Assembly (NCBI GenBank): GCA_965235115.1 | Contig: OZ249445.1 | Span: 8,432,001-8,496,000 of the forward strand | Direction of reading: 5' to 3' | DNA: 64,000 nt | Source of the DNA: Laetmonice hystrix | Taxonomy: Eukaryota | Shown: one piece after another, positions 5,616 through 42,796 of the stretch | Position numbering within the stretch: the first letter of the stretch is position 1 | Layout: every line of letters starts with the position of its first letter | Notes under the pieces: generated by a model | What the model was told of the DNA's origin: nothing | Database searches by the model: none | The model's input: only the letters and a program-made list of their open reading frames with translations | Program-made: the position numbers and the translations under genes

Positions 5616-6220
5616 CTGCCAGTAAACGCCGGGAGACAGACTCTTTCTGGGGAAGCGCCTTGTTTGGGATTATATTACTGGCCTGGCTGGCCGTTGTTAC
5701 AGTCGTCGTTATCTTGGCTATATGTCTGTTTGTCTGCGCTCTCAAACGAACCAAACGGAATTACGGCTCCAGTCCTTCCAACTCCACCACCAAACAGGAC
5801 ATCAGCTGGGGAGAGACTGCCAACGACAACCTCTTCATTGCCTACATGCCCGACCGAAACGAAACGGACTCTGCCAAGGTGGCGGCGTACACTGGTCAAC
5901 CGGCACCGCCAGGAACCGGAACAGCTCCAGCCGGCGGCGGGAAGCCCGGAATGGGCATCCGTCGGAATCGGTCCGGTAACGTGTCCGAATACTCGTACGG
6001 ACACCTCGGCTCACCAGGAGAGGGCTTCAAGGACGTCACGACCAAATCTTTCCCAATGGAGACGGTATCCACAGAAAATGTCAACCATGTCAATCATGGC
6101 GACTTTGTGCTCATGCCGGACCCAAGTTACGGGAGTAGGGACTATATTCTGCCGCGCCAGGCAGACGGCGTGGTCCGTGCAACAAGTTCCGGCGGATATC
6201 GAACATCGAACCGGATGTAA
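5616..6220 (+). CDS. Terminal exon (TM helix + cytoplasmic tail) of a probable fourth paralogue of the collagen-stalk membrane protein family; upstream exons not found in window
   Basis: Acceptor tttgtgtattttcag|CT at 5616 (phase 1, as for the TM exon of the 40122-42796 gene). Encodes ...FWGSALFGIILLAWLAVVTVVVILAICLFVCALKRTKR, sharing the W-L-x-x-x-T TM motif and a cytoplasmic W-x-E-T with the other paralogues; stop 6220; AATAAA 6325-6330. Confidence 0.7.
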
Positions 6221-11172: not shown

Positions 11173-11437
11173 GAGGGGCCTCGGGTGGCCGAGTGGTCTA
11201 AGGTGTCGGCTCCATCATGACACCTAGGACCATCGCCTCACACCGCTGCGACCCGGGTTCGATTCCTGGCCTGGGCTGCATGTGTGAAAGGTTTGTCAGT
11301 CAGTTCCTTCCCGAAGGTCGGTGGTTTCCTCCGGGTACTCCGGTTTCCTCCACCAAGAAAAACTGACTTTCATCTCATCTTCACCGCCGTGATATGACCC
11401 TGGCTGTTGCAAGGCGTAAAACCCCAAATACCCCACC
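11173..11437 (+). mobile_element. tRNA-derived SINE with V-SINE-like central core
   Basis: A box TGGCCGAGTGG (11186-11196), B box GGTTCGATTCC (11256-11266), core GGTTTCCTCCGGGTACTCCGGTTTCCTCC (11323-11351), perfect 13-bp TSD CACAGGTTTTACC at 11160-11172 and 11438-11450. Confidence 0.9.
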
Positions 11438-14400: not shown

Positions 14401-15310
14401 TCGCACCTTCATGCTCACGGCATGAATAAGACGATGGCATTCCAGCCGCTCAGTGACGACCAACGAGATGTTTGGACCGGGGTATAAGGCCTAATCCCCA
14501 TAATCTCTCCCCGCCGCCACCCACCAAGTTCAAAAGGTACAGTGATTGTTTTCTTGGTGTCTTTTTTGGTCTCACACAGCGGTAACCAGCTGTAACACCG
14601 ATGCGGGCGGGGATGGGGCTGGGGGGGGGGGCAGGGGTACGGAACACTTAACATTTCTATGTGCGTGCACCTGTTTTAAATCGGTCGGCGGGATAAGGTG
14701 CTGCAGACGCAGAAGGATCGTGCCCAGGGGAGCCATGCTGCGTTGCATTGCGTGCAGGCGATGGAATCTATAGTCCTGCCCTGAATTATTAGAGGCAGGC
14801 TGCTGCGCATCGTCTTCCTTGACCTTGAAATGAGCTTTACTTGCAACATTCCCCCATGCAAGAAACGAGCAAGCAGGAGTCCCCTCCCGTAATATACAAT
14901 AGTTAGTAAGAACACCTGGTTCCCATTTACCAAATCTATATCCCCTCCTCTACCCTCCATACCCATACCCGGACCTTACACATTCCATATAACATTCCAG
15001 AACAGGTACTGTACTTAATTCCGGCACCACAGTATCAATAATTCAAGTGACTTTGTGTGGTAGATCCATCAAAGTAGGGTGCATCATTTTATTCAAGTGT
15101 AACTGAGTCACTGGCTTGCTCATCTGTCCAAGTGTACCATTCCGTCAGGTCCCATTCATCGATCGTTTCATAGAAGGAGCCAAATCCAGCGCACCCCTTG
15201 AGCGGTTCCGGAATATTCAGTCCTGCCATTCAAATACACTCTAATGTTTATTCATGATAAACACCCGCCGTATAAGGCAAAAATGTCCATATATGGAAAG
15301 GAATTTCCGT

Positions 15311-15413
15311 TGACGTCATTTTCTGAGCAGACGGCTCCAGGAATAGGCGGCCACCAAGGTACGAGGGCATCGAAGCGGGACGGCCTGCAGCAGTGAGTCC
15401 GGCCCGTTAAATA
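15311..15413 (+). promoter_or_regulatory. Putative promoter of paralogue 2: CRE palindrome + TATA-like element
   Basis: TGACGTCA 15311-15318 and TTAAATA 15407-15413 upstream of ATG 15535; spacing resembles the paralogue 3 promoter. Confidence 0.4.
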
Positions 15414-15534
15414 GGCCGCCCCATATCTTGGGTATACCAGAAGATTGTAAACGTTGTACGTGAGACAGACCAAGGACCTATCGAGAAAGGAATTTACCAG
15501 CTTGAAACCCCGAACCAACCCGACTGGGACTAGC

Positions 15535-18500
15535 ATGGATATATTAAGTTCACTTGGATTTGTGCTGGTGGGATGTTTGTTGCTGGCAGACTCCAATGCA
15601 CGTGAGTAGTTGATGTCTTGAACATTCCTCGACCAAACCTGGTCCATCCTTTCACCCAACGAGGACCCATAGACCGACGTCGGCTTTGGTCCAAACAGTA
15701 CTGGCCTGGCCGCGTATCTGAAGAATACTTTATATTAATCCCACTAGATATTATAACGATAACATCATATACTCGTGTATTATAATCTTGATTGAGGTTA
15801 AGGATGCGTGTGCTGCAGCTTATAATTAAGGCGAGAGTAAAGCTTTCCCGCTAAATGGGAATACGAGTAATGTAAAGGTGCAGTCGCGACACTTGTTCGC
15901 TTCCACAGGTGCACGCGGTTCGACGAGCCTGCTACCTTCTATTGATCTATAAATAATCAAACCAGGCGTTAGATGATAAACTCCAAAGGTACCATATTAA
16001 ATTTATGTGATTCCAGATCCAAGTACTCTCACTGTTTATTCAAACAAAAATCAATGAACCATACTTTATTTATTTATTCGTTTATTTTTTATCCTTGTCA
16101 CTGCCAGAATCCAGAAACCAACGAGTGCGGCAGGTGGGCACAGCCCTCGCACCCTCACCGTCTGGTGTTGACACGGCGGGCTCGGTGTTTCTCGTTAATG
16201 ATGGTTTCCTCAGTGAGGGCGTCATCTTCGCCTACGAGGCCTATTTCCGTAACCTTAACCCGGTGCGGTTTCAAGTATGGCGACCTTCGGCGAATTTGGT
16301 CAATGGAACAGACTTAAGAAGCTACACCCTCATTGGGGAAACCAGGGTGGTGCCAACTCTGAGGTTCCAGCCAGAAGTGGTGAGTATAGTCATGATATGT
16401 CATGATACTTGGTGATTCCAACCCGCCAGTCCGGGTCCCGGGGGAAGACTTAGTCCCGGACCCCATTCCCATTAGATTAAAGAAAAGAAAGTTTGAAATA
16501 ATCTGGGGCCCTGGTGAGCTCGGGTCATGGGGTAGGCCTATAGTTACCGTCCCGTTGCTACTGTAACTCCACAACAACAGTCAATGTTAAGTTCATTCAT
16601 CTGTCTTGGAAATACAATCACAGTTTTCATCTGTCGTATAGGAAGACATTTCTAGTCAAATAATTATAGTACATTCCCAATAAGGGAGGTTTGGAATGGC
16701 GAAGTTTGGGGAACCGTTTAGTTTCCACTTGGAGTCGTGACATTTCTAAAGATCAAAAACACAGAGAGGCCCATAACCCCCTAGTGATCTCACACCCCTA
16801 TAGGACGTCAAGCCTAATTATTCTTCCTACAATAAAGGGGATGACGTTTTGCTGCCGCTGGTTCCTAATCATATATCTTTGACGACAACACTGTTGACGT
16901 TAACCTAAGGCGTTGCCCTGGGTGAGGTCTGTTCACTACGCACTGTCATCAGTAGGGGCAAAACGCTAAATCTCATCATCCATACTGAAGTGGGAACGCA
17001 TTGTTCGCCTACAGAAGTAAACGCCTTATTGAACATCATTTTCTTTTATCACTCTTTATGAAAACATATTTACTTCTCACTTAGAGGATGTATTAGACCG
17101 TAAACATGCCAACGAAATGCCATCGCCAAGGGTGTGCTGTGGCTCATTCTATACGCATGTTGCCAACTGAATTCCTCACTAAATACGGCCCTGATTGGCG
17201 TAGAGAAATACTGTTGCTATCCGATAATATCGCAGACAGTAGAGTGGTTCTTAAGTCAACAGGTACTGAGGCAAGGCAATATTTCTAGGTCCTTCTTAGC
17301 GGGAAAGCAATGGTCACGACAGAATCACTGAAGCGATGTTCCCAAACGGTCACATAGGGACTCGAGCATGGCCGACTCCCAGGCCAGGCCGGGGCATTCA
17401 CTGTCGGGTCGGGGGTAGTCTATGGCGTCTTAGGTTTTCAGGGAAACCACTCGAGCGTATTGAGACGCTTCCTTCTTTTAACTTGTTCCAACTTTCATGC
17501 AACTTTCTCTCTCCTCATCTCTCTAATACATTAATAGATACCGGCTTCAATGTCAGAACGGGTGGACGGATTCAGAAATGCCGCTATTCCACTTTCGTTT
17601 ATAAATATTCAGGACTGCTATTTTAAGGCTAGACTCCTGCCGGGGTGGGTGGCCTGTGCTCGAGGCGTTGTATTGGTCGCTAATCTTTGGGCGTCCGTAC
17701 CGCAACCCTGGGCTCGCCGGTGTGGGTCAAACTGTAGTACACACTGGGACCAACCCCCCCAGTCCCAGGCTGCTGAAGCATGTCTATCCATCGGTCGTGG
17801 GAACCCTTCAAAATGATATCACACCAACTACTATATGTCACCCTCTACGACGGCGCCTTTGCATATCAAAACGATTGCTGACCCTTCTCTTGAAACCGAA
17901 TCTATAGAAATCGGACTTTCTATAATGCAGGACAGACCTTACAGCTCCGAGCTAAGTATTAGCTCCTGGCAAGTCCCACCGAGTTCAGTGCCTAGTAGGG
18001 GTCTATCAAGAGAGTGCTGTTTTTAACATCACTTCAGGCATGTACCTGTCTTTCATGTATCTATTTAAGGAAGCTTCCTGGTGGTTTTATATAATAGCAA
18101 GACACTGATGGGGGTGGGGGGGGGGGGGGGGCAGTCCAGAATCCAGACCTTATTAATAGCCTTTTATATTATACGTTCCCTCGCTCTTGTCAGGTAGACG
18201 CAGGTTTTCTAACAGGACCGTTTTTAATCTTTGTAGATCTACATCGAGTCTAAACTCGGACAGTGTACCCATGTCCAAGATCAGGATCGTTTGGGTGTAT
18301 TCTTCGAGGAGGCGCCTGGGTCTGTGTCGTACATGTTTGATCCTAACACTCCCAAGGCCCTCGCCTACACCTTACAGAACGCCTCTAACCCTGTACCCAC
18401 GGGGCAGACAGTCACCTTCGGCACACTCACCTTCCCTTATGACTTCTCAGTTGTCGCCTACATCGATCGAGGTGAGTCAAATCTCTTCCATGTCCCGTTT

Positions 18501-19878
18501 GAACGAATGATAACCAAAAGCATTGTGCAAGATAGAGGCAAACTTTTCTGCATCAGAAGTGCTAAACCGTTTACAACTAAATCGCGGCACATATGTTGCA
18601 GATTCACAGAGATTATAATATGGGATGTCTTTGTTCCAGATGTGTCCCAGTATGTGTTCAATGCGGACGACAGTGTGACCTGTCCACCTGGCCTTCTCAT
18701 CCCTGCCCATGAGGTGGTCACCATCGCGACCACCACACCACCACCTCCCCCTACCGGCCAGCCTGGAGTCCCCGGGCCCCCGGGACCTCAGGTAAAATCC
18801 CTGCTAAATCCGGAAACTTGTGAATGATGATAAACACAATCAAACAAACATATTCCTGGCTCTGGTTGGTTTAGAAATGAGGCTGTATTGTTGAGAAGGT
18901 ATAGAAGTGTCCAATCGGTACTTCCATCAATTATCATCTATTTTGGTTCCTGATCTCGACCGGATGGCTGTTTTCTTATGACCATGTATATGGACACTCT
19001 TGGAATGCGGAGCTGATTTGAGGTGTGGCGTATTTCTTTTTTATATATCTGACAGTGTTCTTATTTAATTGTTGCAGGGTGTTCCCGGACCTTTGGGACC
19101 TCGTGGTCCAGCTGGAGTCCCTGGTCCACCTGGACCAGTGGGACCTATAGGTCCAAGGGGTGACAACGGAGCTACAGGACCAAGTGGAGTTGCTGGGGTC
19201 GAAGGACCTATTGGTCCGCCAGGCCCCTTTGGCGCGACAGGTCCTAGAGGAGCTAAAGGCGACCGGGGACCCCAGGGTGTCGCTGGTCCACCCGGCTCGC
19301 CCGGCAAGAACGCTAACGAACTCCAACCGGGTCAAGTGGCTGGTGAAGATGGCAATTTCTTCTCAAATCCGACCACCGTTATGATCCTCCTTATCTGGCT
19401 CATCATTGTCACCATCCTCATCATACTCATCATTATTCTGGTGGCCACCATGCGCAGGCGACGACGACAACCCAAGATGTCGAGTGAAAGCGAACCGCAC
19501 ACTGCGCATTTCCCGCCAGGTTTGACAGCAGCAGACGACAGGGATTGGATGGGGACACTGAAGGAAGACTCTGAGGCTGGCTACAACAACGACACCATCA
19601 CCGTGGACGACAAGAGGAAATCAAAACTGAAGAAAGCTAATAGTAGCTTAAACGGTACAAGTACTAAACTTGCAGAACCAGATATGACGTCAACATTGAA
19701 ACCTCAACCGGATGTGACGACATCTGCGCAGCCGCCAATTTCACCGATAAGCCCCAAGTCACCAGATGACGGAACAAACTTCGCTTTTGAAAACGAGATT
19801 GGCGTGACGTCGGATACGATAACAAGAACATATGACAACCAAGGGAATCTCTCACACGACTCGATATCCCCCGAGTAA
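15535..19878 (+). CDS. Type I transmembrane protein with N-terminal globular domain and 30 Gly-X-Y collagen triplets (paralogue 2), 508 aa
   Basis: join(15535..15601,16108..16379,18237..18471,18640..18791,19078..19878); all GT-AG, phases 1,0,1,0 consistent, 1527 nt. Signal peptide [22 protein letters not shown]; head with [23 protein letters not shown]; collagen; [31 protein letters not shown] followed by RRRRR. Confidence 0.9.
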
Positions 19879-21950
19879 TAAGTGACGGAATGAGTGTTTT
19901 ATTAACGCAGCGTGCAGTGGGACAATCATGTGAAATGAGAGCGTACGATTCATTCAATTCGATTTTTCCACTGCTATCAAACATTGCAGTATTCAATACC
20001 TTTGCAAAAAGAGTACATTTTAAATGTATCACTTGACAATGTTGTTTTATTTTGTACATAGACGAATGTGAGGTTTGCGCGCGAGAACTAGATATCTACA
20101 GATAATGTGGACGGAAGGACCATGTTGAGTAAAACGTGGAGGTTGTATTGTTTGAACGAAAGGAGGCGCTGATTTATAAAACAATAACCTAGTCAGCGCC
20201 GGACGTTGTTTAAAAGTCGTTTATACTGTGTCTTTCCCGGAGGAGATGCTCTTCACGAGACTGAAGAGTCGCGTCCTTGTTGCCAAAAGCTACGGCGTGA
20301 AATGACATGCTCGATTTATCAATGACTACTCGGTCCAGTGGTATGATAGCAGCACAGGTGAACCTTCTCACCGAAACGTGGACGGTAGGGTGGTGTTTAC
20401 TGGCAAACCAACATGGCAAACTGCCATTTCAAATGGTTCCTCTCCTTCGATTTCCCGTGCAGGAGACATTTGCCATTCTCTGCTGTATATCACCACAACT
20501 ATTAGGGCGAGATGTACTTACTTGTACATATGATATATTTTTTAAACAAATTAAGGTGCTATACATCTCAGACGAGCAGGTCAAAAGATTCCTGTGTGCA
20601 AAACAGATTTACTTGAAAATGTGATATTTTTGTACATACATTGTTATTTATATTTATACATGTGTATATAATAAAGATATCTCCATATCTGAAATATACC
20701 AAACGTGTCGACTGTCTTTTTCAAATACAAGTCTTAGTGTTAATCCAAGCAGCATATGCAATCAGAAAGCCTATAGTTCGAAACCGTCGATGATAAATAA
20801 ACCAGCCATACCATCAAGATTATAAATAATAAACATGTTCATCCGACTATATACAGATAAAATCTACGTCTCGCATCCTATATTAGTTGACTCATAAGGT
20901 GAGAAGCGGGGTGGACCTTACCACTCAACTTGTTTTTAACCGATCTACAGACCTATCCAACAACAGTCCAGATGCGGCAAAAAATCGGATGAATTCCTTT
21001 GAGATCTCTAAGAAATCAGACAATAACAACCATATATTCAAGTATAAACCCAGACTCATTCAGGCCTGCCTGTAAGTACATCCCTTTACCAATGTGACCT
21101 GCCTTACATTCCCCTACATATTATGGAAGTATATCTCATGATGACTCGCTGCGTCTGTGACACAAATTACGAGACAAGACCCTTCATACGGCCTACATGT
21201 GAACTGAAGCCCACCAAAACGATGACATGATGTGTTGTCTAGACAACCATTATTATCACCGCTTGTTGTGAAAGCATCCAAGTGGGCCCCTTTCGTTCCC
21301 GGGAGCAGTTTTCCTGTCCTACCTACACAAAAGCATGCTAAGATCATAACCGCCAGTTGCATTCAGTTCCTGCCATTGTGCCAGGTCACATTGTGCCCAA
21401 GGGTTTACCTAAGCGGCCCCCGCATTGACATGGATATGTACTAAACCAATGAAGGTCTCTCATCTCATTACGATGTCCTACATTCCAGATTAATAGGATT
21501 CCTTACAGAAATCCTGTCCGCTGTGTCACTGTATAAATTATTAGGCAGTTCACAAAAGCTTGGGGGAACGGTTGTTCTACACTATGTAGTGTAATTACAA
21601 GTTAAAGCATCATTGCTCCAACAGACAGTACCTTGGTACCAATTAAAAGCAATTTTCAGTAAAAGCCGACATGTTGTTGGTGGCTCTAGTTATTTACCAT
21701 CACAACCATTTTGAGTAATTCAAGCAGAAGGTATGCGTTGATAAATGTAGGATGAAATCGATGACTAGCATCAGAAAGTGCGTCAACGCAAAATAGGCAG
21801 GCATGAACGAAACAGCTCTGGCGCATGCCAGGCTGATGATATTATTTATGATATTATAAAAAATATATATTTAATATGCAGGACTAGGGTGTAAAGAAAT
21901 TCCAACATATGGTCACAAACGCGGTGATATTTAGCTGCATTAGGTTTGTA

Positions 21951-22140
21951 AAATTACTCTAATCTTGATTATGTGTTGGTCGTACTGTGAAATTACTCTA
22001 CTCTTGATTATGGGTTGGTCATCCTATGAAATTACTCTACTCTTGATTTTGGGTTGGTCGTATTGTCAAATTACTTTAGTCTTGATTATGGGTTGGTATT
22101 TTGTAATTACTCTAGCCTTGATGATGGGATGGTCGTATTA
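21951..22140. repeat. 39-bp tandem repeat, ~5 diverged copies
   Basis: Unit ~TACTCTACTCTTGATTATGGGTTGGTCATCCTATGAAAT repeated in tandem. Confidence 0.85.
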
Positions 22141-27429: not shown

Positions 27430-27837
27430 TGCATTTTGATATGGTAGATTATTTCTTCCGTCATCTCAGAATATCGGCCGTTCCAAAGTGACATGCATGC
27501 ATACTCAAGGTACGCCAGACGCCATTATACCTTTGCGTCTCATTTGATAACTGGAACACCTGCACTGGATGGAAACAAACCCGAGTCAGACGCACGCAGT
27601 TACTCTGCCACTGGAGCAATACTCTTGAACTCTTGCATTTTGATATGGTAGATTATTTCTTCCGTCATCTCAGAATATCGGCCGTTCCAAAGTGACATGC
27701 ATGCATACTCAAGGTACGCCAGACGCCATTATACCTTTGCGTCTCATTTGATAACTGGAACACCTGCACTGGATGGAAACAAACCCGAGTCAGACGCACG
27801 CAGTTACTCTGCCACTGGAGCAATACTCTTGAACTCT
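27430..27837. repeat. Perfect 204-bp tandem duplication
   Basis: 27430-27633 and 27634-27837 read identical base for base by eye. Confidence 0.92.
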
Positions 27838-28127: not shown

Positions 28128-31100
28128 ATGGCAATCAGATGGGGGTTAAGTTTGGTGGCCATCGGTTTGCTTCATCTTGTCGGCCTCACGCCGTTTGCCC
28201 ACGGTAAGTGATGCCTGATTTTGTATGTACAAGTACGAACGCGTTTATTGGCTCCATGTCTCCGCCATGACCGCGTCGTCCCCTTCAATGATATAATCCT
28301 ACATGTATTACCCGTCATGGATTATTCGGGAGAGCTTCAAGTGTCATATTTATCAATATATTTATCGACACAGTACCCTGGCCCATGCTCAGGCAGTGCC
28401 TATCCGATATATACATTTTGTACAGGTGTATATAGTTTACCCCCTCCCCCCATGTTGTATCAAACCTGGTGGATACCGTGGGAAGGATGGGGGTCGGCCT
28501 ATAGATATTGCTCGGGAACCCTGATCGTCTCGGCCACTGGGTGCGGGTTGTGAATGGAGAGGTGTTTTGAGTGGTCGGTGGCCCGAGAAACACGGGGATC
28601 CACTCGCCTAGTCCATGTATAGTGCATGTTTGACATGCTATAATGATCACGTCACGGCATGGTCTAACAATGAAGGATGGCCCCGGCCGGGGGGGGGCGG
28701 GGGGAAGGGTACCTGCCACCGCTGCCTGCCGTACGTGTGCGGCAGCGGTGGCAGGTACCCTCCCCCCCCCCCCGCCCCCCGTACGTGTGCGAACCACAGA
28801 GACGTATTTAAAACACTCAGCCTTTATGAGGAACATTGGCATAAAAAAATACACATTAATTACATTAGGAACGTGAGGGTCTACGCTGCACTGCGTGGGC
28901 CATAACATTAAGTGATTGTCGCAGAACGCACACTCAGCAATACAGTAAACAACCTATCGGTTGTGGAAAGAGGACCTTAGATAAAACAGCTCTCTTTATT
29001 AATTCATCGGGACGTATTGAAAATGGACCTATCTAAGTTCTGTTTCATGAGGACACACCTTTTAATCCGACCCTGGAATGTTTACACCTCCCATTGTGGC
29101 GGCAGTTTGCCCAAAGCAAAGCCAGTGAACCATTCATCATCGACTATATTTATGTTTTTAAAATGTCTGTAAAATAGCATGAATTAATTGCCTGTAACAA
29201 ATAACGTCCTGTTTTAACCTTATTGCCAATTACATGCATGAGGGAACAGATTATAGTCAGAGACGAAATGAGAGAAAAGGTTTTGTTTGTTTTATTACTG
29301 TTAATTTAGTCCGGAACTGTATTTAACTCGTCACGCTGGTTATTTTAATTTGTTTCTAAATTTAGTTTTAAACAGATTATTCCTATGACGTGTTGCAAAC
29401 AGAAAACAGCCATATAAAAAGCTGACAATTTCATCTACTAATTTACAGTTTATTGTATTGCAGGCAATGTTGTACGCCTGGGGAACGCGCTTCAAGCGTC
29501 AACATCTGGAGTTGACATTCCTGGCGTCATATTCCTCATGAATGACGTCATCTTACAGGAAGGAATTGTGTTCGCCTTCTCCGCCTTCTTCCGGTCGTCT
29601 AAACCAATCAGGATCCAGATCTGGCGGCCCGTCAACCCCAACATCGAACAGGAACCAGAAGCCTCTAGGCCCTTCCGGTTGTTATTTGAGACCCGCATCA
29701 TTCCGTCAGTCATCAACCGCCGGGAAGATGTAAGTGTCACCACAAACACTATAATACAGCTACCACGAGCAAAGCACATCTTTCAGTTATACTGTACCCT
29801 TGGTGAAAACATTATGAGCGGTTTGAAGCGTGGTGTATAAATTGATTCCAAAACGGTGTCCACTTACTGAGTGTATAGCGTACTAAAATGTTGTCTATAA
29901 AGGTCTGGTGTATCTGAGCTATGTGAGAACCCTTTCAGTAGCGGTAGGCCTACAGGTCTATTGCCCGGGGCAGCTACAAGGCCATAACATCCCATGAAGG
30001 GCACTGGGGTTATTTCCCATGACTAAAATACGCCACCATTTTGGAGGCGCCAAAATAACTTTTATTGAGAGAGGAGCAGTATTGCCTATATTCCAGGACA
30101 CTTTTATAAGTGGTCTTCTCAAAGCAAGACTAAAATATTTAAAGTGCTTCCAGATAATAGTAATTTGACCCAGGAATGTGTCAAGCACATGTTAGTTCAA
30201 GGTTCACTTTGTAAAACGTGCATTTAATCCCCGGAATGGCATGGTTGTTTTGAAGTAGGTTTATGGGGATTGAAGCCGATTTACTGGTGCGTTAAAACCA
30301 CCTGTAATAAGCGTGGGGTCGGCCCGGTTACTCGACCATTACTGTGAGAGCACCCATACTGGCTTGGTAATCACTGTCCCGACTCGCATTAAACCACAGA
30401 GAGACCGGCTTAACATGTTTTACTCCAGTAACCTCAATCAAATACCACTTCAACACCACGCCAGAAATAACTGACAACTGAAAAAGCATGGATGCAAAAC
30501 GGGATTACTCTTAAAACTGACAAATAAAATAACTATAAAACAAGAGCTACCTGAAATAAAAAGGCCTTTCACCTCCGGCACAGCAACAATGTGACACTAG
30601 AGACCCGCAGAATATAATCTGATATTATAGTTTGATTATAAAGGGACTTCATAAAAACCCACTTGAATGCGTATGTAACCTTGGGAATCTAACACTGGCG
30701 ATTCTAACACATCAGTCCTATATCACTATATGGTCTGGTTTCAGATGTACATTGAGAGTAAGCTGGTTCAGAGGTGTGTCCGTGTCAACCAGGGCGACCG
30801 CCTGGGTGTCTACCTGGAGGAGGCTCCAGGTGCTGTCGCCTACTTCTTTGACAGCACCAAACCCGACGCCCTCGGCCACAATGTCGGCAACAACCCTAAA
30901 CTCAAAATCAACGACACAGTCGGCTTCGACATCCTCAAGTTCCCCTACGATTTCTCCCTCTCTGCCTATATCTTCACAAGTAAGTATGCATGTACCCCTT
31001 GCTGAATCCCAACTGGGCATTGTAAATTCAGCTGTTCCTGAAACTTGGTGTAATGAGCTTTTGTCTGAGACCTGTATCGCCTTTATGACAGACATTATAT

Positions 31101-32323
31101 GTGCGGACATATGATAGGCCACTTATGTTATTGCGCTTCTGTATTTTCGGCCTGAGAAGAGCGAGATGTCCTGACTTTTATATTTTCCGTAATTGCCACA
31201 TCGTGCAAGGGATTGCCGTCTGACGTCTCAATATGTAATGCATTAGCAATAATCATCCTACCTTCCTGTGACTTCCAGATCTAACTCATTTTACGCCCAG
31301 TCCATACGGCTGTCCCGTGGACACCCTGATACCAGACCACGCCAACCCAACTCTGCCGCCCACCACGGTACCTACCATCGCCCCAGGAGTCCCAGGTCAA
31401 CCTGGCCCACAGGTTAGTTCAATTACAAACTTCTGCTAAAACAAGGGGCTCATTGTAGTCGATGTAATTATCCAGAGAACCTAGTAACAGAAACCCTCTC
31501 TTAATTCTCTTTAAGAGGTAAAAACTACATAATATATTATTTTGACTCAGTAATCGAAACAATGCTTTATATTGGTGTCTCATACGTACAATAATGTATT
31601 GAAATACAATTTGTATGCCTTTCCCATCTTCCCATCTTCAGGTCCATACTTTTAACATGCACACTAAAATGCCCACAAAGTGTTATCCGGTCAAATTAAA
31701 ACCGACAATATTTCACTTCACAGGGTCCAAGCGGGATTGTGGGTGGCACTGGACAAGTTGGGAGACCTGGACCAGCAGGTAACCCCGGACCGGCAGGCCA
31801 GGCGGGTCAGGTCGGGGGCGGCGGCGCGGACGGTCCTGACGGCCCGACAGGACCGGCCGGACCGGAGGGTCAGATGGGAAACCGAGGGATGGTCGGACCA
31901 AAGGGCTTTGTGGGGGACCGCGGTCTGGCAGGTCCACCTGGACCCCCCGGGTCGGCGGGACTGATAGGCAACAAGACGGTGGACGAAATCCCACAGGCAG
32001 TCTTTGGTCGCACCATCAACCCCACACTCTTAATGATCATCCTCATCTGGCTCATCATCTGTACAGCCATCGTCATCATCATCGTTATCGTCATCCTGTG
32101 TATCCGCAGGAGGGAGAGACAGTATGAACACAAGCGGCTACCTTCAGACCCTGACTTCAAACCGGCCTGGATGGAAACAGTCAGTGACGAGGAGGACTCC
32201 CGCTACATGACCCAGGACACGAGGCGCACCTCGCTCGAGGCGGCCATCATACCCGAAAACATTCCCAGCTATTCATTTGATAACAGTGTTCTCACTATCG
32301 GAGATGAACCACACAAGACTTAA
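28128..32323 (+). CDS. Type I transmembrane protein with N-terminal globular domain and 31 Gly-X-Y collagen triplets (paralogue 3), 436 aa
   Basis: join(28128..28203,29464..29729,30745..30979,31279..31412,31724..32323); GT-AG, phases 1,0,1,0 identical to paralogue 2, 1311 nt. Signal peptide MAIRWGLSLVAIGLLHLVGLTPFAHG; AFFR..PIRIQIWRP, YIESKL..C..V..GDRLG, FPYDFS; TM NPTLLMIILIWLIICTAIVIIIVIVILCI-RRR. Confidence 0.9.
28689..28791. repeat. GC-rich hairpin / inverted repeat in intron 1 of paralogue 3
   Basis: Perfect 21-bp arms AGGGTACCTGCCACCGCTGCC (28706-28726) / GGCAGCGGTGGCAGGTACCCT (28741-28761), 14-nt loop, extended by complementary G and C tracts. Confidence 0.85.
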
Positions 32324-32879
32324 GTTTTACGCATTTCTTATCATCTTGCAGGTTTACACCTGAAGGTATTTTCTCCTAGTTGAGAAAATCCCGTGATTGA
32401 CTGCTATGAAAAAGACATATTTAGGAGTTTGAACACTCCGCCCTACCAGTAACAGTTTACGGCCAAGGTGAGCGGTGCTATAGCCGAGTATAAACAGGGC
32501 ATTAGTGAATTCGTACATGTCTCATAATGCAACAAGTTCCATTTCTTCGGAAACAATGACACTATGATTCGATGAGTGGATAAATTTCTGTAAATAATTG
32601 CCATGGACAAGTTGCATTTTTTCCCTTCAGGTTTTACGGTGTGTCGCAGTAAAACAAGAGTTGATTCTTCGTCTCAATAACGTGGTGTGCACTGTATGCA
32701 AACGGACCTGTATAATTAGGCCTGAACCACAGAATACCGGTGTGACTAAATGAAAGATTACGATAACATAACCGCTGTAATAATAGGGGCTATTCATAGC
32801 AGCTAGGTTTATGCATACTAAACCAGAAGAAAATGAAACGTGAACTTTTTTTCTCTGGGTGAGTTGTGTTCAGCATGCA

Positions 32880-33541
32880 CAGACGAAACCAGGAGGAGAC
32901 AGAGAGAACATGTCTGACATACTTGGAGGTCTGTGTGCGTACAGACGAAATTATGAGGAGGCAGAAGGAAGCTGTCTGACATACTTGGAGGTCTGTGTGC
33001 GTACAGACGAAATCAGGAAAGATTGAACATGTCTGACATACTTGGAAGTCTGTGTGCGTACAGACGAAATCAGGAGGAGGCAGAGAGAACATGTCTGACA
33101 TATACTTGGAGGTCTGTGTGCGTCCAGACGAAATCAGAAGGCAGAGAGAACATGTCTGACCATACTTGGAGGCCCTTGTGCGTACAGACGAAATCAGGAA
33201 AGATTGAACATGTCTGACATACTTGGAAGTCTGTGTGCGTACAGACGAAATCAGAAGGCAGAGAGAACATGTCTGACCATACTTGGGGGTCTGTGTGCGT
33301 ACAGACGAAATCAGGAGGAGGCAGAGAGAACATGTCTGACATATACTTGGAGGTCTGTGTGCGTCCAGACGAAATCAGAAGGCAGAGAGAACATGTCTGA
33401 CCATACTTGGAGGCCTGTGTGCGTACAGACAAAATCAGGAAAGATTGAACATGTCTGACATACTTGGAGGTCTGTGTGCGTACAGACGAAATCAGAAGGC
33501 AGAGAGAACATGTCTGACCATACCTGGAGGCCTGTGTGCGT
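32880..33541. repeat. ~60-bp minisatellite, 11 copies, with 241-bp higher-order structure
   Basis: Units of 57-64 bp (ACAGACGAAATCAG...AACATGTCTGACATACTTGGAGGTCTGTGTGCGT); variant order A-B-C-B repeated from 33060 and 33301. Confidence 0.95.
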
Positions 33542-34206
33542 ACACATGGCTGTCAGTCTGTACATATTAAAACGTATAAACAATAATCACAAAGATTACG
33601 TGTATATAATACAATTATAATTGTATGAAGCGTCTTGTTTTAAACAGATACGGCCTTTTATCGATCTCTATCTCGTGTTGTATATAGTGTAATATATGAT
33701 GTAAATTAAGAGAATAAATTATTTTGAAATTTACATTTTATAGTCTCTATTATGATGGTTGCATTTCTATAACTGATAAGTGGGCATCGTCGATTAAATA
33801 GTATTATTATATTTCAATAGGAATGACCGAGCCCAAGTCAACGATATAGATTTAGTAACACAATTTGCCATGTACAGTACAACGATTTCGGTCGGTGAAC
33901 CACTTGCAAAAATCAGAGCCATCTAGCGTCGAGCATTATCACAATTTTGTTGGTCCATCTTTATATGAATGACTTGACAACAATAATCTCATTTATAATT
34001 TCCATTGATCGGCAATATGATCACTCATAAATTTTACTGTTTTATCTATCGTACTAATAATTTCTCCAATCCCTTTGCTGTGGTGGCAGGCATCGGAGTG
34101 GCCAAGTGCCTTTCCAATTAATGACATTATTTTCCACCAGGTGGCGATGAAATCATCACTGGCAGTAAGCGTAGTCATATATTCACAGTCACTATTTGAA
34201 GGTAAT

Positions 34207-36054
34207 TTAATGCAATAATGTTTGGAATGGGTATTCTCCATAAGACAGCGGCAAGAATACTGTGGCCACGGTAAGTATGCCTGGGCCACCGAAGTCGTCG
34301 TTGATAACCGTGTGTGGGTGTTGTGATCGTTCAGTCATTCGTCTTCCCAATGATCGGACCATCCGTAGCTGGGCTGCCAACCTCCTCTGCATCCACAATA
34401 CGCGGCTCACCAGTGGCTCTAATCCACTCTCTTGTTGCAGTAAAACTTTTTCGCTGGCACGGTTATTGATTAATAATAAGTTTCCGTTTATTGTTGTCTC
34501 AGGTTCAGATTGTAATAAGCAAGTTTCCTCTGATGGTTCGTGATGCTCAGCTATAGATCTATGATGTGCAGCTGTTGAACCTAATTTGGTTGAGGTACCA
34601 TAGACATAGGCGCTGTTTGCAGAGGAACAAACTTCTACTTGTTTCCCACACTGCTGTACTGTTGACCGCGCCCATGCAGTTCGCAGGTACGTGCAGCTGT
34701 TGGCCGTTTGAGGCGACAAGCACGTTTCAGCAGTGATCTTCGTTCTGACCGCTAGGCTCGCGCTAGCTATCCCCTGGCGGTGAGTTTTAACATCAATATT
34801 GGCCTGGCTGACATGGCGGCGGCTGATCAAGGGTGTGGCGCTCAGTCCCTGAGTTCTGGTCACATTGCTTATTACTTCCACAATGGGAGATTTCGATGTG
34901 AGCGTCTTCCCTTTCGGATTCTGTTTTATGACACGACCACTGCCTCTAGATGATAACTGAGGCCTACTTCTTGCTGTGGGTTCTGTCTTTTCCTTGAGGT
35001 GATGCGTTTTTCCCCTTGTTTTCCCGCCCATGGAATTATCTTCTTTATAAGAGACTGGAATTTTCGCTGGCTTTCCTTTGTCACATTCTTTGATGTTGGT
35101 AGCAGTAGCGTTAGGCAAACCCTGGGGACATACCTTTTCTAAAACTCTAGATGTCTTCTTTTTGAATGTCACAGTCTTTACCACAGTCGTAGAGTTTAAT
35201 ACAATTTGTTGTCGCCTGGCATTCTTTGTAGTGCCCAAACTCTGAATCGATGGTAATTTGGCGCCTTGTTTTGCTGGTACTACGGATACAGACTTTATCT
35301 CTACACCTGTTTGTTCGATGGCCTTACTGCCGCCATGTAGGCCTTTATTTGGGGGAACAATAGTTTTCTCCCTATTTTCCCGTATAGGCTTCTGTTGTAA
35401 GTGATCTTTGGAAGGCTTCTGTTGTAAGTGATCTTTAGAAGGCTGGTAAGAGTTTGGAGCTCGGATAGTGATACATTTCGTGTCACTTATAGTACCAACC
35501 ATTGTTTTGCCCTGGTTTTTAACTAAGCGGGTGATGGGTCTTGGAATAAGGCTCTTCTTGAACACCTCCGTCACATTTCCACCGTCCTTGCAATCGCTTG
35601 TATTGCCTTTCATATTTGCACCGGTCGAGGAGTTACCAGAGTTTAGGCCAACATTTTCTACCCTTATGTCATTGTTTTTACCAACTCTTGATTTCATCCG
35701 ATGGACTACAGCTTTTTTTATTAATTCGAGTGCCGAGGGTTCGACAGGTGGCTGTTTTTTCTTTTCTCTTGAATCTTCAGCTGCTGAAGTTTGAAAATCC
35801 TTTGGAGGCTCTACTTGTGTCGATCCTGGTGTATTCTTTGTGGGGTCTCTCCGAGTTTTGGACGCAATGGAAGTGGCATGGCCTGAAATCCATGCTTTAT
35901 TTCTTTGTTTTTCTCCATCACTTGTATGCCCCGCCCTACTGGAGTTTAAAATGCTGACTTTGATGCTACTTCTCTTTTTATCTCTGATTCCTTTCACTTG
36001 CCTCAAGAAGGTGGTCACTGTTGTGGACTTGGACTCGGGCGTTGAGTGGCGCAT
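34207..36054 (-). CDS. Intronless orphan ORF, 615 aa, Lys/Arg/Ser/Thr-rich, probably disordered; no recognisable domain
   Basis: 1848-nt open frame; ATG has A at -3 and an in-frame stop 33 nt upstream; frame-preserving 27-bp internal duplication (PSKDHLQQK x2, 35387-35444); TATA box and CRE cluster upstream. Confidence 0.7.
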   Translation of the reverse strand: MRHSTPESKSTTVTTFLRQVKGIRDKKRSSIKVSILNSSRAGHTSDGEKQRNKAWISGHATSIASKTRRDPTKNTPGSTQVEPPKDFQTSAAEDSREKKKQPPVEPSALELIKKAVVHRMKSRVGKNNDIRVENVGLNSGNSSTGANMKGNTSDCKDGGNVTEVFKKSLIPRPITRLVKNQGKTMVGTISDTKCITIRAPNSYQPSKDHLQQKPSKDHLQQKPIRENREKTIVPPNKGLHGGSKAIEQTGVEIKSVSVVPAKQGAKLPSIQSLGTTKNARRQQIVLNSTTVVKTVTFKKKTSRVLEKVCPQGLPNATATNIKECDKGKPAKIPVSYKEDNSMGGKTRGKTHHLKEKTEPTARSRPQLSSRGSGRVIKQNPKGKTLTSKSPIVEVISNVTRTQGLSATPLISRRHVSQANIDVKTHRQGIASASLAVRTKITAETCLSPQTANSCTYLRTAWARSTVQQCGKQVEVCSSANSAYVYGTSTKLGSTAAHHRSIAEHHEPSEETCLLQSEPETTINGNLLLINNRASEKVLLQQESGLEPLVSRVLWMQRRLAAQLRMVRSLGRRMTERSQHPHTVINDDFGGPGILTVATVFLPLSYGEYPFQTLLH

Positions 36055-36851: not shown

Positions 36852-36974
36852 CTCCACAGGGTGTTTCTTTCAGCTTTTAATGTAGTTCACCCTCATGTGG
36901 TATGAACGAAATAACGTTAAACGTGAGTAAATAGCCTTGACACGGCTATTTACTTACATTTGAATTGATATTTG

Positions 36975-40000: not shown

Positions 40001-40121
40001 TGCCTCTTTTGGAATACTGAATTCAGCAGTTCTGCAGTGTAACAGCCCAACGAACGTAACTGTAACTGTAACTGATCAACAGCGATGAACATTGTCAGAC
40101 TGACTCGTACCGTTCCTTTAG

Positions 40122-42796
40122 TCAGAAAGCAGTCCGGCCCTCCTGTATGGAGTCATAGGTGGGCTCCACGCCGGGGTTGTCAAAGCCACCTGGGGTTGAT
40201 GTGCCGTTCGGGCCCTCGTATTTCTTCCACAGATCGTTTTGGCTGTCGGCCCAGCGCAGGTTATTGTTGTATTTGTTTTTCCGTCGACAAGTGACACAGA
40301 GAACGACACTGACCAGGAGGATGGTGACCAGAGTCAGCCAGATGATGAGGCCAAGGATCAGATATGGATTCAGGAAGTTCCAGCACCATGTGCAGTCCCC
40401 AACAACCGACTCTGATATCATAAAGAAAGGAGAACAATTAGTACAAAACAATCTCTCAAATGCCTTAAAGTGAAATGAAAAAAATATATAATGATATGGG
40501 GAGTTATCTTTCAAAACGCTATCCGATGTCCTCCCATACCATGTGTCCAGGTTCGAAACCCTTGGCCTTAAAAAGTACAAGTAAAACAAATGGGATACTC
40601 ACCCATTCGAGTTTTCGCTACAATGGCAGTTTGACCATCGTGTCCAGGGGGACCCTGCTTTCCTTCTGACCCTCGAACACCCTGGGGTCCTTGCTGACCG
40701 GGGGGTCCTTTGGGACCGGCAACACCCTGAGGTCCTCGGTCTCCCCTGTCACCCTTGTCTCCTCTGGATCCCGGCAGTCCTGGCCGTCCAGGGCGACCCT
40801 CCATGCCGGGAGGTCCTTCAGGTCCTGCAGGCCCTTGGGGTCCCATTGCACCCTACAGTGACAGAAGACTCCATTTTTAATTCACAAATTTAATCAACAT
40901 TTTCTGCAAATTGCAGATCACATTATATGTTAGAAACTGTACGGTATGCTGAGAGGTGTTTTTCTAATGTTCCTAATGTCTTATCAATCTAATGGTTTGG
41001 GTGTTTTAAAGACTTACCGTTGCTCCAACCGGGCCGCGGACTGAAGGTAGATCGGATGGAATTGCCAAAGTCTTTGGACAGTCTGGCTGACCGTTTGTTG
41101 GATAGAAACTCATATCTGTAAAACATGTAGAGGAATATAATTGTCGATGCCTTAAAGGTCATTATGTCTACCACCTTGTTTTAAATGTCATTATCTTCAC
41201 GTGACCAAAGATTTGTATCGTCCTAACCGCTGCTATTGGCTACAGCTTTATGGACCAAGTGATAAGAAGATGCGTACCGGTGTCGACATATGCGGCAGCT
41301 GAGAAGATGTAAGGGAAGGCGAGTGTATCAAACGAGACGACCGAGCCGACTGTGGGCACCTCGGACTGGTTTCTGGCCGTGTGTTGGTAGGCCTCAGCCT
41401 TGCGCCGGTCAAACGTGTAGGCCACGGAGCCGCTGACCTCGGGGTTATAGAGACCCAGGCGGTCATTGTCCAGAACACGGATACACCGAAACCCCTGGCG
41501 ACTGTGGATATAGATCTGGAATAAATGGAGTTATCTTTAAATATTATTATTGTCAGAATTTGTCAAATCTTGTCTCTTACTCTAACAAGTTTTTAGGAGT
41601 TTGCGAGCGATAAGAATTATTACAATTATTGACACTGGAGTCTGGGAAATTAACGCAATCTTTCCATCGGTACGCTGCACTTCGTTTTGCCCAGACTCCT
41701 GTATGGCCTCTTATATTCCTACTATTCCTGTGATTTAAATCGTTAAAATAGATTGTCAATCAATGTGTGTTCGTGAAATTTCTATTTTCAGGGACTTACA
41801 TCTTCTCTGCCACCACTGACAGCTGGAGTAAAAGGCCAATCCATGACCAACCGGAAGTGTCGAGTCCTGTTCACTGGTCGCCATATTTGGAAATGGACGG
41901 GGTTATTGTTACGGAAGTAGGCAGAGAAGGCAAAGACAACGCCCCTCTGGAGCGCCACGTTGTCAAGTAGGAAGGTTGTGCGCTGCCAGTCCGCGCCAAC
42001 GCTGGAAGCCGTTACTTCATTCCCTACACGCTCAACACGACCTACAGATTCAACAGAAAAGGTGCATCTGGTATTGATGAAGGTTGACTTGGAATGGATG
42101 TTCCAATGTTAAAATTAAAAGCAAAGTTTATCATGCTTACGGTTCCAGGTCCTAACAAAAGGCATTGACTATATATTTCTTATCCTGTACATCTCACAGA
42201 AACACATAAATATTCTGAGGATGCAGGTATTATTCGGTCACAAAAAAATCGACATGTAAGCGCAGAAAGAGCAGAGGCAGAGAGCATAAAACTTTTACTG
42301 GCTATACATTTGAACAGATCTGAATGTCTATATACAATTCTTGTCGTTTTTGCAGCTGAAGTGAAAAAAAAGGGGCAGAACAGCCCTGTTTTATGTGTTG
42401 CACAAACAGTACCAACCTGGTTCGAGGTTTAAAGTATGTTTCTTGTAATGTTATATCTTTATAAAAATGGCCTTTCAAAGAAAATAACGAATATTTGTTT
42501 TTACAGAAAAAAGTCTTTGCATTGGATTCTCCTTTCAGCGCCACTGTATGAACCATACCCGCACCTCAGAAAACAGTATCAAGTCAGACACCTCGTGACA
42601 ACTTACAGAAATGGTGTTTTTATTGTTACTGTATTACCTTTGTGCCTGTACTTTTTTCAATGAAACTTAATAGAGTAGGCTTAGTCGCGCCACGTTTGTT
42701 TTTCTGAAAATGTATAAAGGGAACAGCCAGCTTACCTGTGGAAACTAGGTGAACCAGCACCGTGAAGAAGAAGACATCAATTGCTCTGGCTCGCAT
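40122..42796 (-). CDS. Type I transmembrane protein with N-terminal globular domain and 27 Gly-X-Y collagen triplets (paralogue 4), 392 aa
   Basis: complement(join(42736..42796,41800..42041,41278..41515,41018..41115,40603..40852,40122..40411)); GT-AG, phases 1,0,1,0,1, 1179 nt. Signal MRARAIDVFFFTVLVHLVSTG; AYFRNNNPVHFQIWRP, DNDRLG, FPYIFS; TM NPYLILGLIIWLTLVTILLVSVVLCVTC-RRK; C-terminus ...GRTAF. Confidence 0.9.

Follow-up and report, generated by a model that had tools for sequence, protein, structure and literature searches.

A gene cluster in Laetmonice hystrix predicted to encode type I membrane proteins with an N-terminal head on a collagen stalk

To our knowledge, every characterised animal membrane collagen is a type II protein, and collagen XVII, gliomedin, ectodysplasin A and SR-A/MARCO/CL-P1 are all of this kind. 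A 64,000-nucleotide stretch of Laetmonice hystrix DNA (contig OZ249445.1, positions 8,432,001 to 8,496,000; hereafter the window) raises the question of whether such a protein can be built with the opposite chain polarity. A first-pass annotation had read in it three complete paralogues, and probably a fourth, in which a signal peptide is followed by a head, an uninterrupted Gly-X-Y stalk, a C-terminal transmembrane (TM) helix and a cytoplasmic tail. We examined the gene models, their transcription, the parts of the predicted proteins and their relatives in other species.

Gene structures and transcription

The three complete paralogues, B (15535-19878, plus strand), C (28128-32323, plus strand) and D (42796-40122, minus strand), were borne out by full GT..AG models and by their head exons, two per gene, which are mutually paralogous (40-54% identity, E 1e-15 to 1e-24). 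The suspected fourth, A, proved to be a complete gene of six exons and 33 Gly-X-Y triplets, of which only the last exon (5616-6220) lies inside the window and the remainder extends up to 22.7 kb upstream. The models predict proteins of 541 (A), 508 (B), 436 (C) and 392 (D) amino acids, all with the order of parts that the annotation had described. All splice sites are GT..AG, and the intron phases 1,0,1,0 are common to the four genes. The claim of identical phases stands for the shared introns, but D has a fifth, phase-1 intron at the boundary between its collagen and TM exons, and A also has an extra fifth intron. The exons are collected in Table 1. The stop codon of gene B occupies 19876-19878 and its 3' UTR runs to about 20543.

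Table 1. Predicted exons of genes A to D (positions in the window unless stated otherwise)
Feature	Position	Strand	Basis
Gene A, exons 1-5	C11:8409254-8425541, upstream of window		six-exon GT..AG model, 33 Gly-X-Y triplets
Gene A, exon 6 (last): juxtamembrane segment, TM helix LFGIILLAWLAVVTVVVILAICLFV, cytoplasmic tail, stop	5616..6220	+	AG acceptor exactly at 5616
Gene B, exon 1: 5' UTR, ATG at 15535, signal peptide; phase-1 intron follows	15452..15601	+	X4 spliced contig
Gene B, exon 2: first half of head; GV-FA-A-FR-PV-FQ-WRP motif	16108..16379	+	junctions in contig, paralogy
Gene B, exon 3: second half of head; GDRLG and FPYDFS motifs	18237..18471	+	paralogy, spliced contig
Gene B, exon 4: neck (conserved Cys, LLIP), Pro/Thr linker, Gly-X-Y triplets 1-4	18640..18791	+	spliced contig
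Gene B, exon 5: 26 Gly-X-Y triplets (30 in total), FFSNP juxtamembrane motif, TM helix, 141-aa tail	19078..20543	+	Pfam, spliced contig
Gene C, exon 1: signal peptide MAIRWGLSLVAIGLLHLVGLTPFAH; donor ACG|GTAAGT, phase 1	28128..28203	+	sequence model
Gene C, exon 2: first half of head	29464..29729	+	paralogy
Gene C, exon 3: second half of head	30745..30979	+	paralogy
Gene C, exon 4: neck, three initial Gly-X-Y triplets	31279..31412	+	sequence model
Gene C, exon 5: 28 Gly-X-Y triplets (31 in total), TM helix, 72-aa tail WMETVSDEEDSRY, stop	31724..32323	+	Pfam, model
Gene D, exon 1: ATG at 42796, signal peptide MRARAIDVFFFTVLVHLVST; donor CAG|GTAAGC, phase 1	42736..42796	-	sequence model
Gene D, exon 2: first half of head	41800..42041	-	paralogy
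Gene D, exon 3: second half of head	41278..41515	-	paralogy
Gene D, exon 4: neck, two initial Gly-X-Y triplets	41018..41115	-	sequence model
Gene D, exon 5: 25 Gly-X-Y triplets (27 in total); then a phase-1 intron absent from B and C	40603..40852	-	model
Gene D, exon 6: C-x-W-C juxtamembrane motif, TM helix YLILGLIIWLTLVTILLVSVVLCVTC, 54-aa tail, stop	40122..40411	-	sequence model

Gene B is transcribed and spliced. A single 2275-nt contig from the public run X4, which is RNA-like and probably whole-body, has a depth of 653 and carries all four introns spliced exactly, with junctions at 15601>16108, 16378>18236, 18469>18638 and 18788>19075. The spliced joints were absent from three DNA runs of the same sample as X4, and a genome search returned no second B-like head exon; a retrocopy was therefore rejected as the origin of the contig. 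The junctions of A, C and D are predictions from sequence and paralogy. Of the words sampled across the span of gene D, a fraction of 0.29 occurs in X4, about two thirds of the exonic fraction of 0.44.

Stalk, membrane topology and cytoplasmic tail

In-frame Gly-X-Y runs occupy 19078-19311 (plus strand, 26 triplets), 31724-31975 (plus strand, 28) and 40628-40852 (minus strand, 25). Each run extends into the preceding exon, and the uninterrupted totals of 30 (B), 31 (C) and 27 (D) triplets agree with the 27 to 31 claimed at first pass; gene A has 33. The Pfam model Collagen (PF01391) matched the last exons at E of about 1e-12, with 47.7 bits for B and 45.9 bits for C against a cut-off of 27.2. 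Proline fills the X position in 10-16 triplets of a run and the Y position in 6-9. Stalk length varies little across the family: among 58 full-length members the median is 29 triplets, 36 members have 29-31, and 47 have one uninterrupted run, as does each of A-D. Three members were without a collagen region, and therefore the stalk is not indispensable. Between the stalk and the TM helix lies a juxtamembrane segment of 16-24 amino acids.

By standard geometry a collagen triple helix rises 0.86 nm per triplet, which gives about 26 nm for 30 triplets. When three copies of the ectodomain of the family member P0161 (residues 21-330) were modelled as a homotrimer, the prediction scored 0.31, the mark being 0.32, a result that speaks neither for nor against a trimer. 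We found neither a coiled coil nor a known trimerisation module adjoining the helix. The unequal helix lengths (33, 30, 31 and 27 triplets) and the placing of the paralogues in separate ancient clades do not favour obligatory heterotrimers.

The hydrophobic stretches at the N termini have uncharged cores of 8-16 residues, too short for a signal anchor, and, read by eye, small residues at -1/-3. These features fit a signal peptide that is probably cleaved. Lysine plus arginine amounts to 0.8 over the 15 amino acids that precede the TM helix and to 4.6 over the 15 that follow, and the excess on the C-terminal side recurs in 55 of 57 family members, in the direction of the positive-inside rule. 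The Gly-X-Y region, with its prolines at Y, fits a lumenal location. Judged from these sequence features, the proteins are best read as single-pass type I proteins with the head outside, and the signal-like N terminus, the C-terminal TM helix and the charge bias after it support the opposite polarity that the first-pass annotation had claimed.

The TM helix itself carries a conserved Trp in A-D (…LIWL…), and an …IWL… motif recurs in most family members. The tail motif W-M-G-T-L-K-x-x-T-E-x-x-Y-S-N-E-T was found in 30 of 63 members, some of which carry it twice; of the four genes, B has it, C has a degenerate form, and A and D lack it.

The head and the range of the family

The head comprises about 165-185 amino acids at the N terminus and is joined to a Cys-containing neck. 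Its alignments show the motifs GV-FAF-AYFRS-PVRFQIWRP, GDRLG and FPYDFS, followed in the neck by C-P-x-x-L-L-I-P. Modelling shows an all-beta structure (pLDDT 89.9), and the predicted fold class is that of a lectin-like jelly-roll. The closest structural neighbours were lectin-like and phage-decoration modules, namely a cyanophage A4 capsid-unit chain (Z 10.9), the lectin-like domain of Cwp84 (Z 10.8) and a Bxb1 tail-tip protein (Z 10.4), followed by PHR, CBM32, F-lectin and discoidin domains at Z 5.5-7. In VIA-align, the match to Cwp84 residues 332-497 (PF18560; Z 10.8) covered 140 aligned residues at 2.8 Å, and Atlas rows with PF18560 reached a TM score of up to 0.51. Identity in the structural alignments was 7-16%. 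The modelled head shares the jelly-roll fold of the lectin-like beta-sandwiches (Cwp84 PF18560, CBM32, F-lectin, discoidin, PHR) but not their sequence membership; the resemblance is to a very common beta-sandwich, and the fold does not imply glycan binding.

Searches for a known family gave little. At E<=1, Pfam assigned the head exons to no family except a stray DUF4904 (E 0.072, under its cut-off), and a sequence search of the PDB with the head profile had no match at the same threshold. Foldseek returned nothing from the PDB at E<=1e-3 and, from the Swiss-Prot models, weak TNF and TGF-beta-prodomain rows (TM<0.31) and a Bacillopeptidase F domain (0.50). A C1q/TNF-type head was considered and rejected because the structural rows are weak (TNF ligands at E>=1e-2, TM 0.25-0.33) and the PDB gave no match at E<=1e-3; there was also no Pfam C1q match, and the head is N-terminal.

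The head-exon profile found at least 272 cluster representatives at E<=1e-3, 141 of them at E<=1e-10. The named head-bearing representatives belong to annelids, a nemertean, an orthonectid and a hemichordate, and every one is labelled 'hypothetical' or 'uncharacterized'. Full-length relatives in other species are 35-44% identical to each paralogue, and a check for a characterised family of the same architecture returned full-length matches labelled only 'hypothetical' or 'uncharacterized', with no family name or function described. A-D each group with proteins of other species and not with one another; the subtypes are therefore old and have been retained. A search of the literature for collagenous membrane proteins of type I did not turn up any such family, which is weak evidence of absence given its thin coverage of subscription journals.

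In Lamellibrachia satsuma LSAT2_001082 a signal peptide, a head, a stalk of about 30 Gly-X-Y triplets, a TM helix and a tail follow one another as in A-D; the tail motif is there, and the protein is 41-44% identical to B, C and D along almost its whole length. Paralvinella palmiformis LSH36_687g01025 has head, collagen, TM helix and tail as in A-D, and Ridgeia piscesae NP493_789g00026 matches the head profile, with no collagen found by Pfam. These three are family members and show no difference in kind. The multi-head relatives XP_074651551.1 and XP_074650029.1 of Tubulanus polymorphus and CAH1777351.1 of Owenia fusiformis have the same head and a single C-terminal TM helix, but they differ from A-D in their 4-7 tandem heads and in a longer collagen, which can reach 49 triplets. 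Both Tubulanus proteins match Pfam collagen and have cEGF/EGF_CA modules between the collagen and the membrane; in the Owenia protein a pattern search gave a run of 17 Gly-X-Y triplets. In Glandiceps talaboti (hemichordate) and Intoshia linei (orthonectid) the heads are repeated, and collagen and TM helix were not detected. Across the full-length relatives, Pfam recognised Collagen alone, plus EGF modules in the multi-head forms. According to the gene lists, the relatives P0023 and P0162 are intronless genes in tandem with another collagen gene.

Proposed function and known collagenous proteins

We lean toward reading A-D as expressed members of an undescribed animal family of type I membrane proteins that are trimeric and receptor-like. 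Three chains would wind into a collagen triple helix of about 26 nm (30 triplets at 0.86 nm each), which would keep three putative ligand-binding heads at a fixed height over the cell surface. The head would probably bind a glycan or another polymeric surface, and binding may be coupled, through adaptors that recognise the tail motif, to signalling or endocytosis. The design would be that of a scavenger receptor or membrane collectin in reverse, with the head N-terminal and the anchor C-terminal.

A rather unlikely alternative is that the proteins are structural, with the head binding matrix, cuticle or the head of a neighbouring cell and the rod setting the distance from membrane to matrix, as in collagen XIII, collagen XVII and gliomedin of vertebrates. 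The 29-31 triplets of 36 of the 58 members look like a ruler-like requirement, the EGF-like modules of the multi-head relatives are typical of matrix proteins, gene B has a high transcript depth in a probably whole-body run, and A and D are missing the tail motif. However, that motif and its Tyr are conserved in distant members and sometimes doubled, which points to cytoplasmic partners, and Pfam detected no known matrix-binding domain. It is less probable still, and in our judgement improbable, that A-D are membrane-bound precursors of a soluble collectin-like opsonin, the ectodomain being shed or, in A and D, released by way of a poly(A) site in the pre-TM intron. Such release would suit the layout of A and D, where the TM helix and tail occupy their own last exon; reading through the intron in D ends the frame after 11 codons, the juxtamembrane segment of A contains K-R-R, and shedding is common among type II membrane collagens (PMC4678570). 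Yet visual inspection of the juxtamembrane segments in B, C and D revealed no R-x-K/R-R furin site, the conservation of the TM helix and tail exceeds what a disposable anchor requires, and the gene B transcript, the sole one seen, includes the TM exon.

The inverted polarity could also be an artefact of reading, the N-terminal stretch being an uncleaved anchor or the orientation some other one. By a crude measure the signal sequence of gene D has an uncharged run of only 8 residues, but cores of 8-16 residues with small residues before the predicted cleavage site and the strong bias of Lys plus Arg to the C-terminal side of the TM helix (0.8 versus 4.6) make this very improbable. Even two spans flanking the collagen would leave the collagen and head lumenal and the C-terminal tail cytosolic. 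That the genes are chance frames or decaying pseudogenes is scarcely credible: junction evidence is limited to gene B, but all four genes have full open frames and canonical sites, a transcript of gene B was observed, the RNA-like run contains about two thirds of gene D's exonic word fraction, and each paralogue has full-length relatives in other species at 35-44% identity.

The receptor-like reading of A-D can be set against known systems. The defining features of the MACITs (XIII, XXIII and XXV) are a type II topology, helices with interruptions and a Cys motif conserved at the C terminus (PMC4678570). With them and with collagen XVII, gliomedin and ectodysplasin A, A-D would share the class of membrane-anchored collagen triple-helix proteins. 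They differ from the MACITs in having a signal peptide and a C-terminal TM helix, not an N-terminal cytosolic domain and TM helix, and one uninterrupted run, not COL1-COL3 separated by NC regions; their C terminus is a predicted cytoplasmic tail and their ectodomain N-terminal, and they have no C-terminal ectodomain Cys motif. SR-A/MSR1, MARCO, SCARA5 and CL-P1/COLEC12 are like A-D in their single pass, collagen stalk, distal head and short tail. In the class A scavenger receptors and CL-P1, however, the N terminus is cytosolic, the head is a C-terminal SRCR or C-type lectin domain and the neck is a coiled coil, whereas A-D are predicted to be type I, with an unrelated N-terminal jelly-roll that has no Pfam model and with no coiled coil. 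C1q, the collectins, the ficolins and adiponectin are secreted and bear trimeric heads C-terminal to a short collagen stalk; A-D resemble these soluble defence collagens in joining a short stalk to a recognition head and differ in being membrane-bound with the head N-terminal.

The same order of parts and the same polarity are found in Scl1 and Scl2 of Streptococcus pyogenes, which have a distal N-terminal variable head, a collagen-like rod and C-terminal surface anchoring, appear as lollipops in rotary shadowing and use the N-terminal domain to nucleate trimerisation (PMC8968730). They differ in being bacterial and anchored to the cell wall, with no cytoplasmic tail, no hydroxyproline and an unrelated head, whereas A-D have a eukaryotic TM helix, a tail and spliceosomal introns. 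Scl1 and Scl2 are analogues, not relatives.

More tentatively, we consider it possible that the family is an independent, mainly spiralian (annelids, nemerteans and relatives) receptor type with a recognition head on a collagen stalk and a reversed chain. Its triple helix might be nucleated by the head and neck or by the Trp-containing TM helix, W-M-G-T-L-K…Y-x-N might be a new signalling or endocytic module, and the ancient paralogues kept in the tandem cluster might be ligand-specific receptors or subunits of defined heterotrimers. In collagenous surface receptors and transmembrane collagens, folding is thought to begin at a membrane-proximal N-terminal coiled coil, and we know of no animal protein in which collagen folding has been described as nucleated by an N-terminal head and neck or by a TM helix. 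A conserved, expressed family of several genes that has the reverse polarity and lacks a coiled coil would be a natural test of how short triple helices nucleate and keep register near the membrane. The tight conservation near 30 triplets suggests selection on the length of the stalk itself, about 26 nm. The unannotated jelly-roll head and the conserved cytoplasmic motif would be additions to the surface receptors of invertebrates, and the head merits a domain model of its own for genes that are currently annotated merely as 'collagen' or 'hypothetical'.

Gene models and transcription

The window (G000:C11:8432001-8496000) is a eukaryotic chromosome segment of a 627-Mb assembly. A six-frame scan of it detected exactly three long in-frame Gly-X-Y runs, and both plus-strand Gly-X-Y exons match Pfam Collagen (E about 1e-12). 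When open-frame pieces were compared all against all, two more exon families were found to be common to the loci of B, C, and D, three of the four neighboring paralogues A to D. We read the exon boundaries off the DNA and assembled spliced models, in which all introns are GT..AG. The uninterrupted helices of B, C, and D contain 30, 31, and 27 triplets, respectively, exceeding the single-exon runs because collagen begins one exon earlier. The three complete paralogues of the first-pass annotation and their uninterrupted (Gly-X-Y)27-31 stalks are thus borne out. Its intron phases (1,0,1,0) hold for the four shared introns; absent from it was a fifth intron of gene D, also phase 1, which separates the collagen exon from the transmembrane (TM) exon. 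Retention of the intron after gene D exon 5 would, from the reading of the frame, yield head and collagen without a membrane anchor.

A whole-genome search with the head exon returned a copy 19 kb upstream of the window. The resulting gene A model is complete, and the start at 5616 previously assigned to the cluster, with its probable fourth paralogue, is the exact acceptor of gene A's last exon.

Coordinates of genes and other features (window positions unless prefixed C11)
Feature	Position	Strand	Detail
Gene A	C11:8409254-8409326, 8413075-8413340, 8417208-8417451, 8419926-8420080, 8425259-8425541, then window 5616-6220		six exons; 541 aa, 33 triplets
Gene B	15535-15601, 16108-16379, 18237-18471, 18640-18791, 19078-19878	+	508 aa
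Gene C	28128-28203, 29464-29729, 30745-30979, 31279-31412, 31724-32323	+	436 aa
Gene D	42796-42736, 42041-41800, 41515-41278, 41115-41018, 40852-40603, 40411-40122	-	392 aa
Gene D, retained intron after exon 5	40571-40602	-	11 more codons (GEYPICFTCTF), then stop
Gly-X-Y run, gene B	19078-19311	+	26 triplets, six-frame scan
Gly-X-Y run, gene C	31724-31975	+	28 triplets, six-frame scan
Gly-X-Y run, gene D	40628-40852	-	25 triplets, six-frame scan
Exon family 1	16011-16412, 29442-29837, 41791-42108(-)		41-46% identity, E 1e-15 to 1e-24
Exon family 2	18237-18824, 30679-31002, 41243-41530(-)		44-54% identity
X4 contig blocks, gene B	15452-15601, 16108-16378, 18236-18469, 18638-18788, 19075-20543		
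Class C GPCR, two exons	57343-60362	-	498-aa open frame: ANF_receptor, NCD3G, first half of 7tm_3
Class C GPCR, 146-aa frame	57343-57783	-	second half of 7tm_3
Open frame between genes C and D	34207-36054	-	615 aa, Ser/Lys/Thr-rich
Tandem repeat, window start	7-861		52-bp unit x16.5
Tandem repeat	21947-22139		39-bp unit x5
Exact duplication	27429-27837		204 bp
Tandem array, just downstream of gene C	32879-33544		117/181/241-bp

This DNA is present in four public sequencing runs of one sample, three genomic and a fourth, X4 (59 million letters), which has only 41% of the words (sampled short sequences) from gene B's span. Over 15000-20900, X4 yields one 2275-nt contig at depth 653 that leaves out precisely the four introns modeled for gene B, each GT..AG, giving gene B's predicted junctions RNA support. 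A retrocopy as the origin of this contig was ruled out: the genomic DNA runs of the same sample contain none of the spliced gene B joints, and a whole-genome search of the assembly found no second B-like head exon. Therefore, the contig is a transcript, and it fixes the structure of gene B, UTRs included. For gene D, X4 has 0.29 of the words in the span, of which 0.44 is exonic; this word share, rather than any junction, suggests that gene D is transcribed.

On its minus strand, the window also contains two class C GPCR exons (metabotropic-glutamate or taste-receptor type), which are unrelated to the collagen genes. The open frame between genes C and D has no Pfam match, sits in strong AT skew (-0.26), and may be either a single-exon gene of low complexity or a frame open by chance.

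Family architecture, topology, and head fold

We built a profile from five paralogues' first head exons and scored it against 1.84 billion cluster representatives; 272 matched at E<=1e-3, of which 141 reached E<=1e-10. Full-length matches (384-520 aa) have the same order of parts as A to D. In 58 full-length members the stalk has a median of 29 triplets (29-31 in 36) and mostly lies 16-29 aa from the TM helix; 47 have a single uninterrupted Gly-X-Y run, and three lack the collagen region. The TM helix nearly always contains Trp, in the context …(L/I)(I/V)WL…, often preceded by F-F-S-N-P. A tail motif, W-M-G-T-L-K-(S/E)-x-T-E-x-x-Y-S-N-(E/D)-T, occurs in 30 of 63 tails, some with two copies; it is present in gene B (17 residues), degenerate in C, and absent from A and D. 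It includes Y-x-N, which we note, speculatively, as a candidate phosphotyrosine docking site.

Named members, all labeled "hypothetical" or "uncharacterized" in public databases, come from annelids (Lamellibrachia satsuma, Ridgeia piscesae, Paralvinella palmiformis, and Owenia fusiformis), an orthonectid (Intoshia linei), a nemertean (Tubulanus polymorphus), and a hemichordate (Glandiceps talaboti). Some relatives combine 4-7 tandem heads with one TM helix, and the two Tubulanus proteins have longer collagen plus cEGF/EGF_CA modules. In the hemichordate and orthonectid proteins the heads are repeated, and neither collagen nor a TM helix was detected.

The N termini of A to D have a short N-region and then an apolar core, in which runs of 8-16 residues are uncharged. 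Small residues, read by eye, precede the likely cleavage site (e.g., …LLLADSNA|QS in B), so that the signal peptides are probably cleaved. On the Kyte-Doolittle scale, the hydrophobic segment at the C-terminal side scores 3.0-3.7, and an Arg/Lys cluster (RRRRR in B) follows it. Among 57 family members, mean K+R is 0.8 over the 15 residues preceding the TM helix and 4.6 over the 15 following it, and the count is greater after it in 55. This bias, taken with a presumed lumenal collagen domain, supports a predicted type I topology for A to D and the family, with head and stalk outside and tail inside. Domain order and charge bias likewise support the head-stalk-membrane order, of opposite chain polarity to known membrane collagens, first proposed for the cluster.

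The head has no Pfam family match and no PDB sequence match. For the head of the Lamellibrachia member, AlphaFold2 gave an all-beta model from a 32-row alignment (pLDDT 89.9, pTM 0.85). Foldseek against the PDB returned nothing at E<=1e-3. An independent search matched it to a cyanophage A4 capsid-unit chain (Z 10.9), the lectin-like domain of C. difficile Cwp84 (Z 10.8), a Bxb1 tail-tip protein (Z 10.4), a PBCV-1 capsid protein (Z 9.0), and PHR, CBM32, F-lectin, and discoidin domains (Z 5.5-7). The fold also occurs, at 13-18% identity in AlphaFold DB clusters and the ESM Atlas, in unnamed domains of mollusc, brachiopod, annelid, and sponge multidomain proteins and of bacterial surface proteins; Swiss-Prot holds no close counterpart. 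As modeled, the head is an unannotated jelly-roll of the lectin-like class, and from fold class it may bind glycans.

Age and genomic spread of the paralogues

A maximum-likelihood tree of 52 heads places the four paralogues A to D in four separate clades, each with proteins of other species. Therefore, the cluster represents old, retained subtypes, and this placement argues against recent duplication as its origin. Gene D groups with members P0170, P0171, and P0174 (support 100/96), with which it shares a C-x-W-C juxtamembrane motif.

This genome has another full member at C11:4.21 Mb and collagen-bearing members at C19:5.10 Mb and C4:5.51 Mb. At C19:7296900-7300700 (minus strand), at least three tandem heads occupy about 4 kb, resembling the Tubulanus and Owenia multihead proteins, and no collagen run was detected up to 30 kb away. 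The locus at C11:9.11 Mb has a head, and no collagen was found within 25 kb. In ENA assembly ERZ26052378, from another organism, members P0023, P0162, and P0165 are encoded on contigs of 0.72 and 1.49 Mb; two of their genes lie in tandem, separated by about 9 kb and oriented alike. Each was called as one unbroken 1449-nt ORF, so these genes are intronless, whereas A to D have 5-6 exons.

Proposed working and comparison with known systems

At the 0.286-nm rise per residue of standard collagen geometry, 30 triplets form a rod of about 26 nm. The simplest reading is that a trimer would hold three heads at a fixed height over the membrane, and the conserved tail would link ligand binding to cytoplasmic partners; by design, A to D would then be molecules of the scavenger-receptor or membrane-collectin type. 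Because there is no coiled coil, the candidate sites of helix nucleation are the head plus the neck between head and collagen, which has two conserved Cys, or the conserved TM helix. One rival reading is a role as a structural spacer or in adhesion, which would fit the conserved stalk length and the lack of the tail motif in A and D. The TM helix of A and D lies on a last exon of its own, as would suit a second rival, a soluble lectin made by shedding or alternative termination. The receptor or adhesion function originally proposed is plausible as a hypothesis.

SR-A, MARCO, CL-P1, collagen XVII, gliomedin, and ectodysplasin all have type II topology and a head at the C terminus, the end at which soluble defense collagens carry theirs as well. 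To our knowledge, the bacterial Scl1 and Scl2 are the only well-known proteins with the polarity of A to D. In these "lollipops," trimerization is nucleated by a distal N-terminal head, after which come the collagen rod and, at the C terminus, the surface anchor (PMC8968730). The resemblance is analogy and not kinship. By definition, MACIT collagens have type II topology, interrupted helices, and a Cys motif at the C terminus (PMC4678570), whereas all three features are absent here. Full-text literature searches turned up no account of a type I collagenous membrane protein in animals, which is weak negative evidence.

Taken together, these results confirm and extend the observation of a cluster of type I membrane proteins with collagen stalks and support the architectural part of its interpretation. 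New here are the inverted polarity of a collagen-stalk surface protein, its head domain, and its tail motif. The family is real, expressed, and conserved, yet at present invisible in annotation.
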